In this document: positions 86 through 47,410 of the stretch, one piece after another | How positions within the stretch are numbered: the first letter of the stretch is position 1 | Layout: every line of letters begins with the position of its first letter | Sequence record: OR699282.2 | Reading direction: 5' to 3' (one strand) | DNA: 64,000 nucleotides | Position numbers and translations under genes: made by a program | Notes under the pieces: model-generated | What the model saw: only the letters and a program-made list of their open reading frames with translations | Database searches by the model: none | Told to the model about the DNA's origin: nothing

Positions 86-1388
<1,303 letters not shown>

Positions 1389-41351: not shown

Positions 41352-41526
41352 GACATTTGATGAGTGGTTTAATCTACACTATAATATAAATGCAGCAGAT
41401 ATATACTATTTTAAGCTTGAATTGTATATATCATTGCGTAACCCAATTGAGTACTATAACAACATTATCAATTGTGATGATTTTGGTACATATTTTAGTA
41501 TAGCCGTTATGGATATTAAGAGATGA
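41341..41526 (+). CDS. microprotein possibly related to the THEEW family
   Basis: MQPKTFDEWFN. Confidence 0.45.
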   Translation: MQPKTFDEWFNLHYNINAADIYYFKLELYISLRNPIEYYNNIINCDDFGTYFSIAVMDIKR

Positions 41527-41702
41527 CACATGAAGAATGGATGACAATGATGAAAAAACGTTATGACCAGTTTGGAAATGGATTTATTGATGGTCATTTC
41601 GATATTTTACGAGACAAATATAAGTTCGAATCATATGTACTAGATGAGAATGGAAATCGTTGGTTCATCTATGAGCTTGCGGTTAGAGACAAAAAAATAT
41701 AA
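41523..41702 (+). CDS. THEEW microprotein 1 (59 aa, not in the ORF track)
   Basis: MTHEEWMTMMKKRYDQFGNGFIDGHFDILRDKYKFESYVLDENGNRWFIYELAVRDKKI. Confidence 0.75.
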   Translation: MTHEEWMTMMKKRYDQFGNGFIDGHFDILRDKYKFESYVLDENGNRWFIYELAVRDKKI

Positions 41703-41780
41703 TAATCTTTTCCATTGTCCATTGCAATGCTTTCTTTACAGAAGAATAAATGAAACACTTAATTGAACTGGATACATAAA

Positions 41781-41957
41781 ATGACACATGAAGAATGGAT
41801 AGAGTCACTAAAATATAAACATGATCATTTTGGATTTGGTATACGCCAAGGCCATTATGATGTTTTGAACGATAAAAAAACGTTCGAATCATTGGTTTTG
41901 AACGAAGATTCCAACCACTGGTTCATCTACGAGCTTGCTATTAGAGATAAAAAATAG
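41781..41957 (+). CDS. THEEW microprotein 2
   Basis: MTHEEWIESLKYKHDHFGFGIRQGHYDVLNDKKTFESLVLNEDSNHWFIYELAIRDKK. Confidence 0.75.
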   Translation: MTHEEWIESLKYKHDHFGFGIRQGHYDVLNDKKTFESLVLNEDSNHWFIYELAIRDKK

Positions 41958-41962
41958 TAAGA

Positions 41963-42298
<336 letters not shown>

Positions 42299-42299
42299 A

Positions 42300-42482
42300 A
42301 TGACACACGAAGAATGGATGTCCAAACAGCATAAAGAACATGACTGCTTTGGGAATGGCATTCGTCAGGTACATTATGATATATTAAGAGATGAAAATCT
42401 TTTCAGGTCATATGTTTTGGATACCAGAAAACCCTGGTTTATATGCGAACTGGCATTTAGAAAGTCAAATAATCAAAACTAA
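42300..42482 (+). CDS. THEEW microprotein 3
   Basis: MTHEEWMSKQHKEHDCFGNGIRQVHYDILRDENLFRSYVLDTRKPWFICELAFRK. Confidence 0.75.
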   Translation: MTHEEWMSKQHKEHDCFGNGIRQVHYDILRDENLFRSYVLDTRKPWFICELAFRKSNNQN

Positions 42483-42498
42483 ACAAGGAATACAAAAA

Positions 42499-43043
42499 AT
42501 GGAAACAACTTTATTAGAAGTTATTCAATCATTAAAACCTGAAGATGAGGTTCAAGTACTACTACATGGTTATCGTGTAAAAGGTACTGTGGTTTTAGTC
42601 AATGATACAACATTGGTTATTACAGAAACAAACCCATATGATAGTAATCAACTTGCCAATATCCATATCGATATCACTGGAATTATTGGTGTCGGTGTAT
42701 CTAAAACACTTGCATAAATCATTAATTCATTATATAATGATTATCACTGGTTCTAGATGAGGATAATATTATGCATTTTGAAAAATTCAACGTAAATCGT
42801 AACACACGCATTGAAGTTCTTTATGAAACTCAAGACACCATTAGTATTCGTACAAGTAGTGGGGATGTATATCATGACTGTACGATTGGCTGGGAACAGG
42901 GAAGAACGCGTAGTGCAGTATTTGATAATTATCGCTTTTATCAAGGAGACACTACGATTTGGCCTGAATACGTAGAAGATATTGCGTTTGAAGATGAACA
43001 TAAAGATGAATTTATCAAATTTAATCCTCAAACTGAATCATAA
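42499..43043 (+). other. two small hypothetical ORFs (about 42499-42717 and 42771-43043)
   Basis: AAGGA and GAGGA RBS; promoter TTGCAT-17-TATAAT near 42710. Confidence 0.55.
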
Positions 43044-43060
43044 ATAATGGGACATCACAT

Positions 43061-43176
<116 letters not shown>

Positions 43177-43180
43177 AAAT

Positions 43181-43282
<102 letters not shown>

Positions 43283-43287
43283 AAACC

Positions 43288-43448
43288 ATGACGCATGAAG
43301 AATGGATGAATGACATTAATTTTAGATATTCGGGTATCGGTAAATGGCTAAAGTATCATTGGGAATTCATTTCAGAGCCACATATGTATGATAAACTTAT
43401 CAACGATCCAGCATATGAAATGTACTTAATTGAACTACTGGTACGAAT

Positions 43449-43452
<4 letters not shown>
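43288..43452 (+). CDS. THEEW microprotein 4 (54 aa)
   Basis: MTHEEWMNDINFRYSGIGKWLKYHWEFISEPHMYDKLINDPAYEMYLIELLVRI; AAGGT RBS. Confidence 0.7.
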
Positions 43453-43614
<162 letters not shown>

Positions 43615-43624
43615 AAAAAAAAGA

Positions 43625-44037
<413 letters not shown>

Positions 44038-44063
44038 CTAAATAATTCAGTACTGTATAATGC

Positions 44064-44147
<84 letters not shown>

Positions 44148-44400
44148 TTAATAATTCAAAGGTGAATATGATGCTATCACACAAAACAGCAACTGTTGAA
44201 AATATTGAATCATTATCTGCACAAGAATTGGTTGACAAAATTAAAGAAGTATGTGATAATAATGGCATTGATATGAATGATACATTTATTAGTGTAGGTT
44301 ATGGTGATTTAGAAATTCAATCTAAAACACTATATTATACTTGACTAAATAGTTCAGTACCGAAGGAGATTAATATGTTTAAAGATGAACGTCCAGATTT

Positions 44401-44441
<41 letters not shown>

Positions 44442-44447
44442 GAATTC

Positions 44448-44790
44448 CACAATCAGACGTATATGGTGTAAGTTACGTCGATGCAATCCAGAACAAGATC
44501 TCTGGTACTCTAGGAAGTGGTGAATGTTAACCTAGACGGGTTTGATAATTGGACGATAGGCAATTATTACTTGACTAGCAGGTTGAAACTAGAGGTGACA
44601 GTCCTTCACCAAACTGGAAAACCGGATGGACTTTTATTTAAAAGGGTAAGGCGTGGAAATATGTTTACAGAAGTTGCTTTTAGTAGCCTGTACGCCCCAC
44701 GTCAAGGTAGCCGAAAGGCAAGTTAAAACGGATGGTTATAAAGCTGAATTAACAGCGGCGTTTAAAAGCGTCACCATCCATTTTTTTTAA
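44448..44790 (+). ncRNA. candidate large structured ncRNA A (about 340 nt)
   Basis: behind promoter 44413-44441; about 10 consecutive hairpins incl. GCC-GAAA-GGC; GGATGGT/ACCATCC closing stem then T8. Confidence 0.65.
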
Positions 44791-44804
44791 TTAAAGTTGG
44801 TGAT

Positions 44805-45194
<390 letters not shown>

Positions 45195-45210
45195 TATTAA
45201 GTATTGATAT

Positions 45211-45456
<246 letters not shown>

Positions 45457-45461
45457 CTAAA

Positions 45462-45626
<165 letters not shown>

Positions 45627-45650
45627 ACGAAATTACAATAGGAAATTAAA

Positions 45651-47071
<1,421 letters not shown>

Positions 47072-47073
47072 TA

Positions 47074-47130
<57 letters not shown>

Positions 47131-47215
47131 AGTAAGAGTAAAAATGAAAGTAAGTAAAAAAACTACCAAGCAGCTTGAAGAACTTTGTAGTGCTGCACCT
47201 ATGCCGACTCTTGGC

Positions 47216-47316
<101 letters not shown>

Positions 47317-47328
47317 TATCTTACTTCT

Positions 47329-47410
<82 letters not shown>

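Follow-up and report, generated by a model that had tools for sequence, protein, structure and literature searches.

A promoter-headed cassette that probably specifies two independent, trans-acting accessory RNAs lies in the transfer RNA (tRNA) region of a jumbo coliphage, around 44448-44790 of the 64,000-nt stretch of sequence record OR699282.2 that we analyzed (hereafter the window; coordinates are those of the window, and the parts of the cassette are on the plus strand). Both RNA modules are non-coding and are conserved as structures, not as reading frames. Module 1 is one family common to unrelated virulent phages, where it resides in tRNA arrays, and the cassette is accessory: it can be lost. 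What is new is the module 1 family, with its triple-pseudoknot fold and its spread across phage families, together with a reusable three-way junction in module 2; a non-tRNA stable RNA within a phage tRNA cluster is of an already known kind.

The phage is of the 121Q/PBECO4-like type (Asteriusvirus). BLAST searches with the 400 bases around the region returned Escherichia phage BAU.Micro_ELP-22 at 100% identity, and 121Q, PBECO4 and ~30 other Asteriusvirus jumbo phages at 97-99% identity. ARAGORN placed seven tRNA genes at 41985-47408, on both sides of the region. The original prediction, made from the letters of the window, had described a single, unclassified structured RNA of ~340 nt that is richer in GC than its flanks. 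The GC difference is present (0.38-0.45 within the region versus 0.25-0.33 in the flanks), and a structured non-coding RNA in the tRNA region is supported by covariation, broken reading frames and the ARAGORN tRNAs. The proposed unity was not supported: the two halves are distributed independently.

Module 1 is a pseudoknotted RNA shared by unrelated phages

Module 1 (44446-44632) is an RNA of ~187 nt with six hairpin helices and three pseudoknot contacts. We gathered 14 distinct copies from GenBank phages, IMG/VR and metagenomes, aligned them, built a covariance model (R1) from the alignment and realigned the copies to it. R1 found a single copy in the window (232 bits) and scored the homologues from 14 loci at 144-233 bits; neither a covariance model nor BLAST revealed a paralogue within the window. 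The family was widened by exact-pattern scans of sequence collections, with R1 run on individual loci. Degenerate patterns in IMG/VR and metagenomes gained only the loci L008 and L016-L020, and a later degenerate pattern gained two chance matches, both of which R1 rejected.

The family occurs in Asteriusvirus, Alcyoneusvirus, Bragavirus (T4-like), Novosibvirus (T5-like), ~20 Aeromonas T4-like phages and one uncultured phage (L008). BLAST of the segment at ~44443-44630 against phage genomes gave 91-92% identity to the T4-like Bragavirus phages PM2 and Pm5461 and to Morganella phage vB_Mm5, 86% to T5-like Proteus phages (Novosibvirus), 85% to Shigella phage SdyM006 and 81% to the Klebsiella jumbo phages K64-1 and RaK2, while a 64-nt core of the first half of the region matched the Aeromonas T4-like phages. 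Module 1 was located in a tRNA array in every occurrence, and in several phages it takes up the whole interval from one tRNA gene to the next. In PM2, tRNA-Gly (1426-1497) is followed by module 1 (1498-1699) and tRNA-Asp (1699-1771); the order is the same in SdyM006, and it is tRNA-Leu, module 1, tRNA-Ser in T5-like Proteus phage 1. Module 1 lies immediately 3' of tRNA-Pro in avDM6 and CC2. About 70 phage GenBank records carry it, annotated as nothing or as spurious small proteins.

Module 1 of the window and that of PM2 are 92% identical, whereas their neighboring tRNA-Gly genes are visibly much more diverged: in an alignment of seven tRNA-Gly genes the mean column identity was 75%, and the window and PM2 genes differ at many positions. 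This contrast suggests recent horizontal transfer, very strong constraint, or both. Searches of 5,426 complete E. coli genomes and of the PLSDB plasmids found nothing similar to module 1, and its core pattern was absent from 185,579 species genomes. We therefore rejected an origin from, or mimicry of, E. coli chromosomal or plasmid sequences.

Pairs were counted in the six helices that align cleanly (28 pairs), with 500 shuffles and partners slid by 1-3 columns as controls. In these helices 99.2% of the cells pair canonically and 12 of the 28 pairs have changed on both sides. None of the 500 shuffles reached the observed measures, and the slid controls had at most three both-side-changed pairs and 24-42% pairing. 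The paired changes follow the helices.

The 5' strand of module 1 takes part in a pseudoknot contact, PK1, in which CCAC (44447-44450) pairs with GUGG (44517-44520) in the loop of helix Hc. PK1 covaries, being CCAC:GUGG in the enterobacterial phages and GCAC:GUGC in the Aeromonas phages (alignment pair 8-89: CG in 10, GC in 3); in L008 it is CUAC:GUAG, read by eye because the L008 row is misaligned by two columns. Hc itself (UCUAGG/CCUAGA, 44509-44514 with 44531-44536) has both-side changes in four of six pairs, with 100% of cells paired. Independent folds of bounded segments showed that the hairpins Ha, Hb and Hd are each retained with different sequences. Ha (GACGUA/UACGUC, 44456-44461 with 44474-44479) is GGGAUA/UAUCCC in Aeromonas phage 65, GGGUA/UGCCC in CC2-like phages and AUGCAU/AUGCAU in L008. 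Hb (CCAGA/UCUGG, 44488-44492 with 44501-44505) varies in length, from the shorter CCG/CGG of SdyM006 and Proteus phage 1 to the longer CCAAUA/UGUUGG of L008. The stem of Hd (AUAAUUG/CAAUUAU, 44545-44551 with 44561-44567) is UUAAUUG/CAAUUAA in K64-1, AUGAUUG/CAAUCAU in L017, GGUAGU/ACUACC in Aeromonas phages and UCGGA/UCCGA in L008, and its loop motif GACGAUA (44552-44558) is invariant (13/13 sequences).

Downstream of Hd is an H-type pseudoknot with two covarying stems, S1 (ACUUG 44569-44573 with CAGGU 44579-44583) and S2 (CUAG 44575-44578 with CUAG 44589-44592). The outer pairs of S1 vary by phage (AC/GU, AG/CU, CA/UG, CC/GG) and RNAalifold recovered this stem independently; S2 is CAGG/CUUG in CC2-like phages. 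Helix Hf (GGUGA/UCACC, 44594-44598 with 44606-44610) also covaries, its alignment pair 175-185 being found as GC, AU, UA and CG. Its loop, CAGUCCU, provides GUCC (44601-44604) for the last contact, PK2, with GGAC (44628-44631), which sets the 3' end of module 1. PK2 occurs as GUCC:GGAC, ACCC:GGGU, GCCC:GGGC and AUCC:GGAU, with both-side changes in two of four pairs and 100% of cells paired. One position may be of note: 44591, the middle of the S2 3' strand, changes from A to U in CC2-like phages, and both of its possible partners change too, namely 44576 in S2 and 44615, part of a CUG by which Hf could be lengthened. This pattern is compatible with two alternative conformations, and it represents one evolutionary event.

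The helices of the original prediction that fall in module 1 (GACGTA/TACGTC, CCAGA/TCTGG, CTAGG/CCTAG, now extended to TCTAGG/CCTAGA, ATAATTG/CAATTAT and GGTGA/TCACC) are where it had put them, as are its other named stems, and all five have comparative support. The list was real and incomplete: it missed the three pseudoknot contacts and the CTAG/CTAG pairing. Thermodynamic folding is less informative. The minimum free energy (MFE) fold of module 1 alone is a wrong and unremarkable nested structure (z = -1.25), which is to be expected of an RNA with pseudoknots, and the whole region folds only mildly better than shuffled sequences (z = -2.15). Thermodynamics alone is thus weak evidence here, and it is the covariation that shows more than chance.

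Module 2 and the composite make-up of the region

An A/U-rich linker, CUUUUAUUUAAAAGGGUAA (44632-44649), lies between the modules and may be a processing site. The CUUUU/AAAAG stem proposed earlier is present within it, but is absent from the tRNA-flanked copies and has no comparative support. Module 2 (44650-44788) begins with a long hairpin, continues with a GAAA hairpin and closes with a three-way junction and a U-run. Its folding z-score is -3.54, and its MFE fold coincides with the comparative structure. From ~44645 onward the sequence is restricted to Asteriusvirus and Alcyoneusvirus, except for the 5' hairpin.

This hairpin, module 2a (44650-44703), is closed by P1 (GGCGUGG/CCACGUC, 44650-44656 with 44697-44703) and continues through a 2-bp step (44663-64 with 44694-95), P2 (UACAG/CUGUA) and P3 (GUUGC/GUAGC). 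P2 and P3 had been predicted and have comparative support, whereas the GGCG/CGCC closure of the arm was replaced by the 7-bp P1, which covaries, including in Kuravirus, and is the MFE solution. In an alignment of six sequences, Kuravirus among them, 95.5% of cells pair and four pairs have changed on both sides, versus none in the slid controls. The copy in Kuravirus XT32 is 83% identical, with its P1 changes compensated, and in the Kuravirus podophages module 2a is inside a long non-coding stretch.

The predicted GCC-GAAA-GGC tetraloop hairpin (44710-44719) also has comparative support. It is part of the conserved string GGUAGCCGAAAGGCAAG and is kept in Asteriusvirus, Alcyoneusvirus and a paralogue in EJP2; in 121Q and L016, GGU replaces GGC, leaving a G-U pair. 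A search with a 17-mer of this hairpin gave mostly chance matches in G+C-rich contigs.

The three-way junction (44730-44779) is closed by the stem Pa (GGAUGGU/ACCAUCC) and holds two inner hairpins, Pb (GCUG/CAGC, 44743-46 with 44753-56) and Pc (GGCGUU/AGCGUC, 44757-62 with 44767-72); the junction and its closing stem were foreseen in the original prediction, and comparative analysis supports them together with both inner hairpins. Among nine distinct copies, 95.4% of cells are paired and six of 17 pairs have both-side changes, a covariation score exceeded by none of 500 shuffles. The junction is also reused elsewhere. K64-1 and RaK2 have a further copy that caps an unrelated RNA, here called RNA X, that follows tRNA-Gly; in L018 it starts 8 nt after tRNA-Arg; and in EJP2 it is found with the GAAA hairpin between tRNA-Ser and tRNA-Arg.

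In layout the junction loosely echoes the acceptor/T-arm stack read by RNase P, which brings to mind tRNA-like end-processing elements such as mascRNA (the MALAT1 3' end) and the tRNA-like 3' part of T4 species 1 RNA. Its closing stem measures 7 bp, with UA following the 5' strand, and a helix of 5-6 bp abuts the 3' strand without a spacer. It differs from a tRNA in having no T-loop consensus, no CCA and no fourth arm, and in its 4-bp arm with a 6-nt loop. ARAGORN did not recognize it in standard or mitochondrial mode and gave only noise at a lowered threshold, and it did not match the Rfam tRNA or mascRNA models. Given these rejections, we do not call the junction tRNA-like in a formal sense.

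Asteriusvirus is the only group in which both modules are joined behind one promoter. In K64-1 a sigma-70-type promoter (TTGAAC...GATATAAT) separates them, just after the linker. In the metagenomic locus L017 the order is promoter, module 1, promoter, an unrelated structured RNA of ~165 nt, promoter, tRNA-Arg, promoter, module 2. Module 1 is found alone between tRNA genes in T4-like and T5-like phages, and the module 2 hairpin alone in Kuravirus. The separate distributions, and the promoters and RNA that intervene, lead us to conclude that the region is composite.

The predicted promoter is at 44413-44441 and heads the cassette. It consists of TTGACT, a 17-nt spacer and a TG-extended TATAAT, and matches the sigma-70 consensus at 11 of 12 positions in addition to the TG extension. 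Its 22-nt core, TTGACTAAATAGTTCAGTACTG, occurs four times within 800 bp (43625, 44034, 44341 and 44413), where none is expected by chance. Each copy heads a small cassette: a 117-aa open reading frame (ORF), a tRNA-Gly with a 60-aa ORF, a 10-codon ORF and the two RNAs, the copy before the 10-codon ORF being decayed. These repeats may be sites of cassette gain and loss.

The T8 run, likewise anticipated, is at 44781-44788, one base past the junction stem. The run is likely a transcript end or an attenuation point. The stem before it has 7 bp, four of them G-C, and encloses a branched interior of 36 nt; a consensus terminator scan did not call the site because of this branched loop. The junction copy in K64-1 has a weaker T run (AAAUUUUAAUUU), and in EJP2 a tRNA follows instead. 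In the Asteriusvirus cassette we found no promoter or terminator between the 44413 promoter and the U-run. A gene of 129 aa (44805-45194) begins 16 nt past the U-run and has no promoter of its own.

Phage phAPEC6 retains the promoter and the first ~38 nt of module 1, a remnant that R1 detects, and both modules are deleted. The ribosome-binding site of the next gene follows the remnant directly, and this gene is 84% identical to the 129-aa ORF of the window. BLAST gave the same truncated match in Sharanji and several other phages.

Function, known systems and alternative explanations

We propose that the cassette provides two independent structured RNAs that act in trans as accessory factors, a reading that we consider probable. 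In this phage, both modules would be co-transcribed from the 44413-44441 promoter, the transcript would end or attenuate at the junction and U-run, and the modules would probably be separated in the linker. In the T4-like and T5-like phages, maturation of the flanking tRNAs would free module 1 from a polycistronic tRNA precursor, with RNase P cutting at the downstream tRNA, and an endonuclease and 3' trimming acting at the upstream one. Both ends of module 1 are buried in pseudoknots, which would allow it to persist as a stable RNA acting in trans. The three-way junction would be a reusable 3' end module with a role in end formation, stabilization or processing.

As to the partner of module 1, its transfer among unrelated phages that infect Enterobacterales and Aeromonas, with identities of up to 92%, makes a conserved host factor likelier than a phage protein, and these phages have unrelated replication and structural machinery but related hosts, which again favors the host. 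We tentatively suggest a factor that handles tRNA or translation, or a tRNA-directed defense nuclease that the RNA would decoy or block. Equally speculative is the broader idea that module 1 represents a new functional class of phage RNA. It might be catalytic, but we would sooner expect a decoy or inhibitor, working in trans on a conserved host factor that handles tRNA or attacks it, a defense nuclease for example; it would spread horizontally as a counter-measure among the tRNA arrays of unrelated virulent phages and switch between S2 and an extended Hf.

Several points weigh against the trans-acting reading or the strength of its support. The natural deletions show the RNAs to be non-essential. 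Only 5 nt separate the -10 hexamer from the CCAC of PK1; if transcription began 6-8 nt after the hexamer, the Asteriusvirus primary transcript would have a shortened PK1. Transcript ends, processing and stability are predicted for both RNAs, and the neighboring genes, none of them of assigned function, point to no partner for either. Sequence diversity comes down to roughly four independent lineages, and few evolutionary events therefore underlie the covariation counts; the counted alignment was fitted to our own model R1; and Ha, Hb and Hd were left out of the counts because the Aeromonas and L008 rows misalign there. For the tail at 44611-44627 and for CGGGUUUG, no pairing partner is kept across lineages: GUUUG/CAAAC and CUGG-AAAA-CCGG were rejected as pairings because they are absent from other lineages.

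GOLLD and ROOL are structured non-coding RNAs of several hundred nucleotides, often near phage or prophage tRNA genes, and a single ~340-nt RNA working as a unit in their manner was one alternative. The Asteriusvirus stretch, bounded by one promoter and one U-run with no other promoter or terminator between, would suit it, as would the ~35 records that hold both halves contiguously. We consider it very unlikely, since the halves occur apart in other phages and are separated by a promoter in K64-1 and by an RNA and a tRNA in L017. No pairing between the halves was found, the GOLLD and ROOL models did not match in the region, and the region is about half their size and resolves into two separable small modules. 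Still less credible is that the conservation is coding. The predicted 69-aa GTG ORF exists (44517-44726), together with overlapping frames of 27 and 45 aa, and several GenBank records annotate hypothetical proteins here. The 69-aa frame is not conserved, however: it and the 27-aa frame have stops or lose the start in PM2, K64-1, RaK2, Aeromonas phages and L008, and the 45-aa frame is shifted within module 2 by single-base indels that distinguish the window from K64-1. Variable columns are spread evenly over codon positions (22/18/26), with no third-position bias; conservation follows the pairing and not the frame, and no Pfam family matched the ORFs of the region.

Two further alternatives concern module 1 or its downstream gene, and we regard each as unlikely. 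Theta ribozymes, which are hepatitis delta virus (HDV)-like, pseudoknotted and located immediately downstream of phage tRNA genes (PMC10879173), set a precedent for a self-cleaving RNA that trims its neighboring tRNA or frees itself. Module 1 would fit this role in that, in PM2, SdyM006, Proteus phage 1, avDM6 and CC2, it begins where the CCA of the preceding tRNA ends, and in its multi-pseudoknot fold with invariant unpaired nucleotides. However, in the jumbo phages it has a promoter of its own and lacks an upstream tRNA that could be processed, and host RNase P and 3' trimming already explain tRNA maturation. Module 1 is also far larger than a minimal HDV-like ribozyme, and an HDV-like P1-P2-P3-P1'-P4-P2' order, the nested double pseudoknot, was rejected on inspection because the 5' strand pairs within a 16-nt hairpin loop, which has no room for P3 or P4. 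No Rfam ribozyme model, HDV-type or other, matched at E<=10. The position of the 129-aa gene, close behind the U-run and without a promoter, would instead suit a cis-acting leader, a riboswitch or attenuator working through the junction, and the S2 nucleotide that covaries with two alternative partners is switch-like. Against this, tRNA genes follow module 1 in PM2, SdyM006 and Proteus phage 1, promoters stand between or after the modules in K64-1 and L017, and phAPEC6 has the same gene directly behind the promoter without the RNAs.

No known RNA family accounts for the region. Rfam 15 gave no match over 44400-44800 at gathering scores or at E<=10, as the original prediction of an unclassified RNA would have it. 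At E<=0.1 over the homologous stretches of 11 loci there was again no match to the region, the only hits being tRNAs and a group I intron elsewhere. We found no description of these RNAs in Rfam or the searchable literature. YrlA RNAs, bacterial Y RNAs, are reportedly structured, non-coding and tRNA-mimicking, and some are said to be phage-encoded; the YrlA model did not match at E<=10, and no Ro60/Rsr gene was seen nearby. The non-coding RNAs of PA5oct, a related jumbo phage, reportedly have no similarity to other sequences, according to their authors.

In genomic setting and probable biogenesis, module 1 appears most similar, by analogy, to rnaC and rnaD (species 1 and 2) of phage T4, which are likewise small, non-coding and inside a phage tRNA cluster, by or between tRNA genes. 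Transcription of the T4 tRNA region yields RNAs C and D, for which no role has been established (PMC3014915). Homology was rejected: the sequences share no alignment blocks, BLAST at word size 7 gave only chance matches, and R1 found nothing in the T4 tRNA region. The two also differ in size and spread. Module 1 has ~187 nt and three pseudoknot contacts and occurs across three unrelated phage groups, whereas the T4 species 1 and 2 RNAs have 139 and 119 nt and are found only among close relatives of T4.

Further RNAs and neighboring features of phage tRNA arrays

Phage tRNA arrays are viewed as tools for codon supply and for escape from host nucleases that cut tRNA. To our knowledge, the non-tRNA RNAs within them have lacked an explanation ever since the sequencing of T4 RNAs C and D in the 1970s. 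Loci related to the one studied here contain at least three more unannotated RNA families (RNA X, the L017 cassette RNA and the L022 gap, described below), which suggests that phage tRNA arrays are islands of non-coding RNA as well as of tRNA. Module 1 is tractable, as it has a defined fold, is up to 92% identical across T4-like, T5-like and jumbo phages of the laboratory hosts E. coli, Proteus, Klebsiella and Aeromonas, and comes with natural deletion variants in phAPEC6 and Sharanji. The minimum gain from our analysis is a corrected annotation and a model for the family; at best, the function of a class of RNA becomes open to experiment.

RNA X has the core GAAUAAGGGUUAACAGUA...ACAAACGAGUAACCC.GAAA.ACCCGAAGC and no Rfam match. 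It was located at 1334-1434 of the K64-1 locus (L002), at 688-788 in phage mogra (L028) and at ~700-770 in Cellulophaga phage Nekkels_1 (L029). K64-1 and RaK2 have it after tRNA-Gly, and the T4-like mogra has it between tRNA-Met and tRNA-Arg; further occurrences are in T5-like Proteus phages, in Erwinia and Klebsiella phages of ~145 kb, and in Cellulophaga phages. The ~165-nt RNA of L017 (600-770, minus strand) is a promoter-headed non-coding cassette between module 1 and tRNA-Arg, closed by a 14-bp helix (GGUGAGUAACAUUG/CAAUGUUACUCACC), with no counterpart in the window or the other loci. L022, from an uncultured 175-kb phage with 17 tRNA genes, has a G+C-richer non-coding gap of ~395 nt (215-610, minus strand) between two tRNA-Met genes. 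The gap contains CUUGCCUAGCAGGUGGAAAC...GGUAGCCGAAAGGCAAG, that is, a string like the S2/L3 segment of module 1 and the exact GAAA-hairpin string of module 2; neither Rfam nor R1 matched it.

Smaller elements were seen beside these. In two Aeromonas phage loci (L013 1290-1367 and L003 1590-1669), ~80 nt conserved between module 1 and tRNA-Thr form two hairpins, GGUUGAU/AUCAACC and AAUCA/UGAUU, and may be another small RNA. The K64-1 locus has two paralogous non-coding elements (1-100 and 690-790) that share GGCUUGGUGAGCGACGGCAA and each end in a T run, one of them just before tRNA-Leu. A group I intron (104 bits) occupies 2460-2692 of L018, a metagenomic Alcyoneusvirus-like contig, downstream of its tRNA/RNA cluster. 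In the window, a weak tRNA call at 43181-43259 (29.3 bits against a threshold of 29) was missed by ARAGORN; the 121Q annotation has a tRNA-Leu(taa) at the matching place. Five paralogous ORFs of 54-66 aa, all starting MTHEEWM, are interleaved with the tRNA genes at 41523-43613 of the window (starts at 41523, 41763, 42282, 43288 and 43449).

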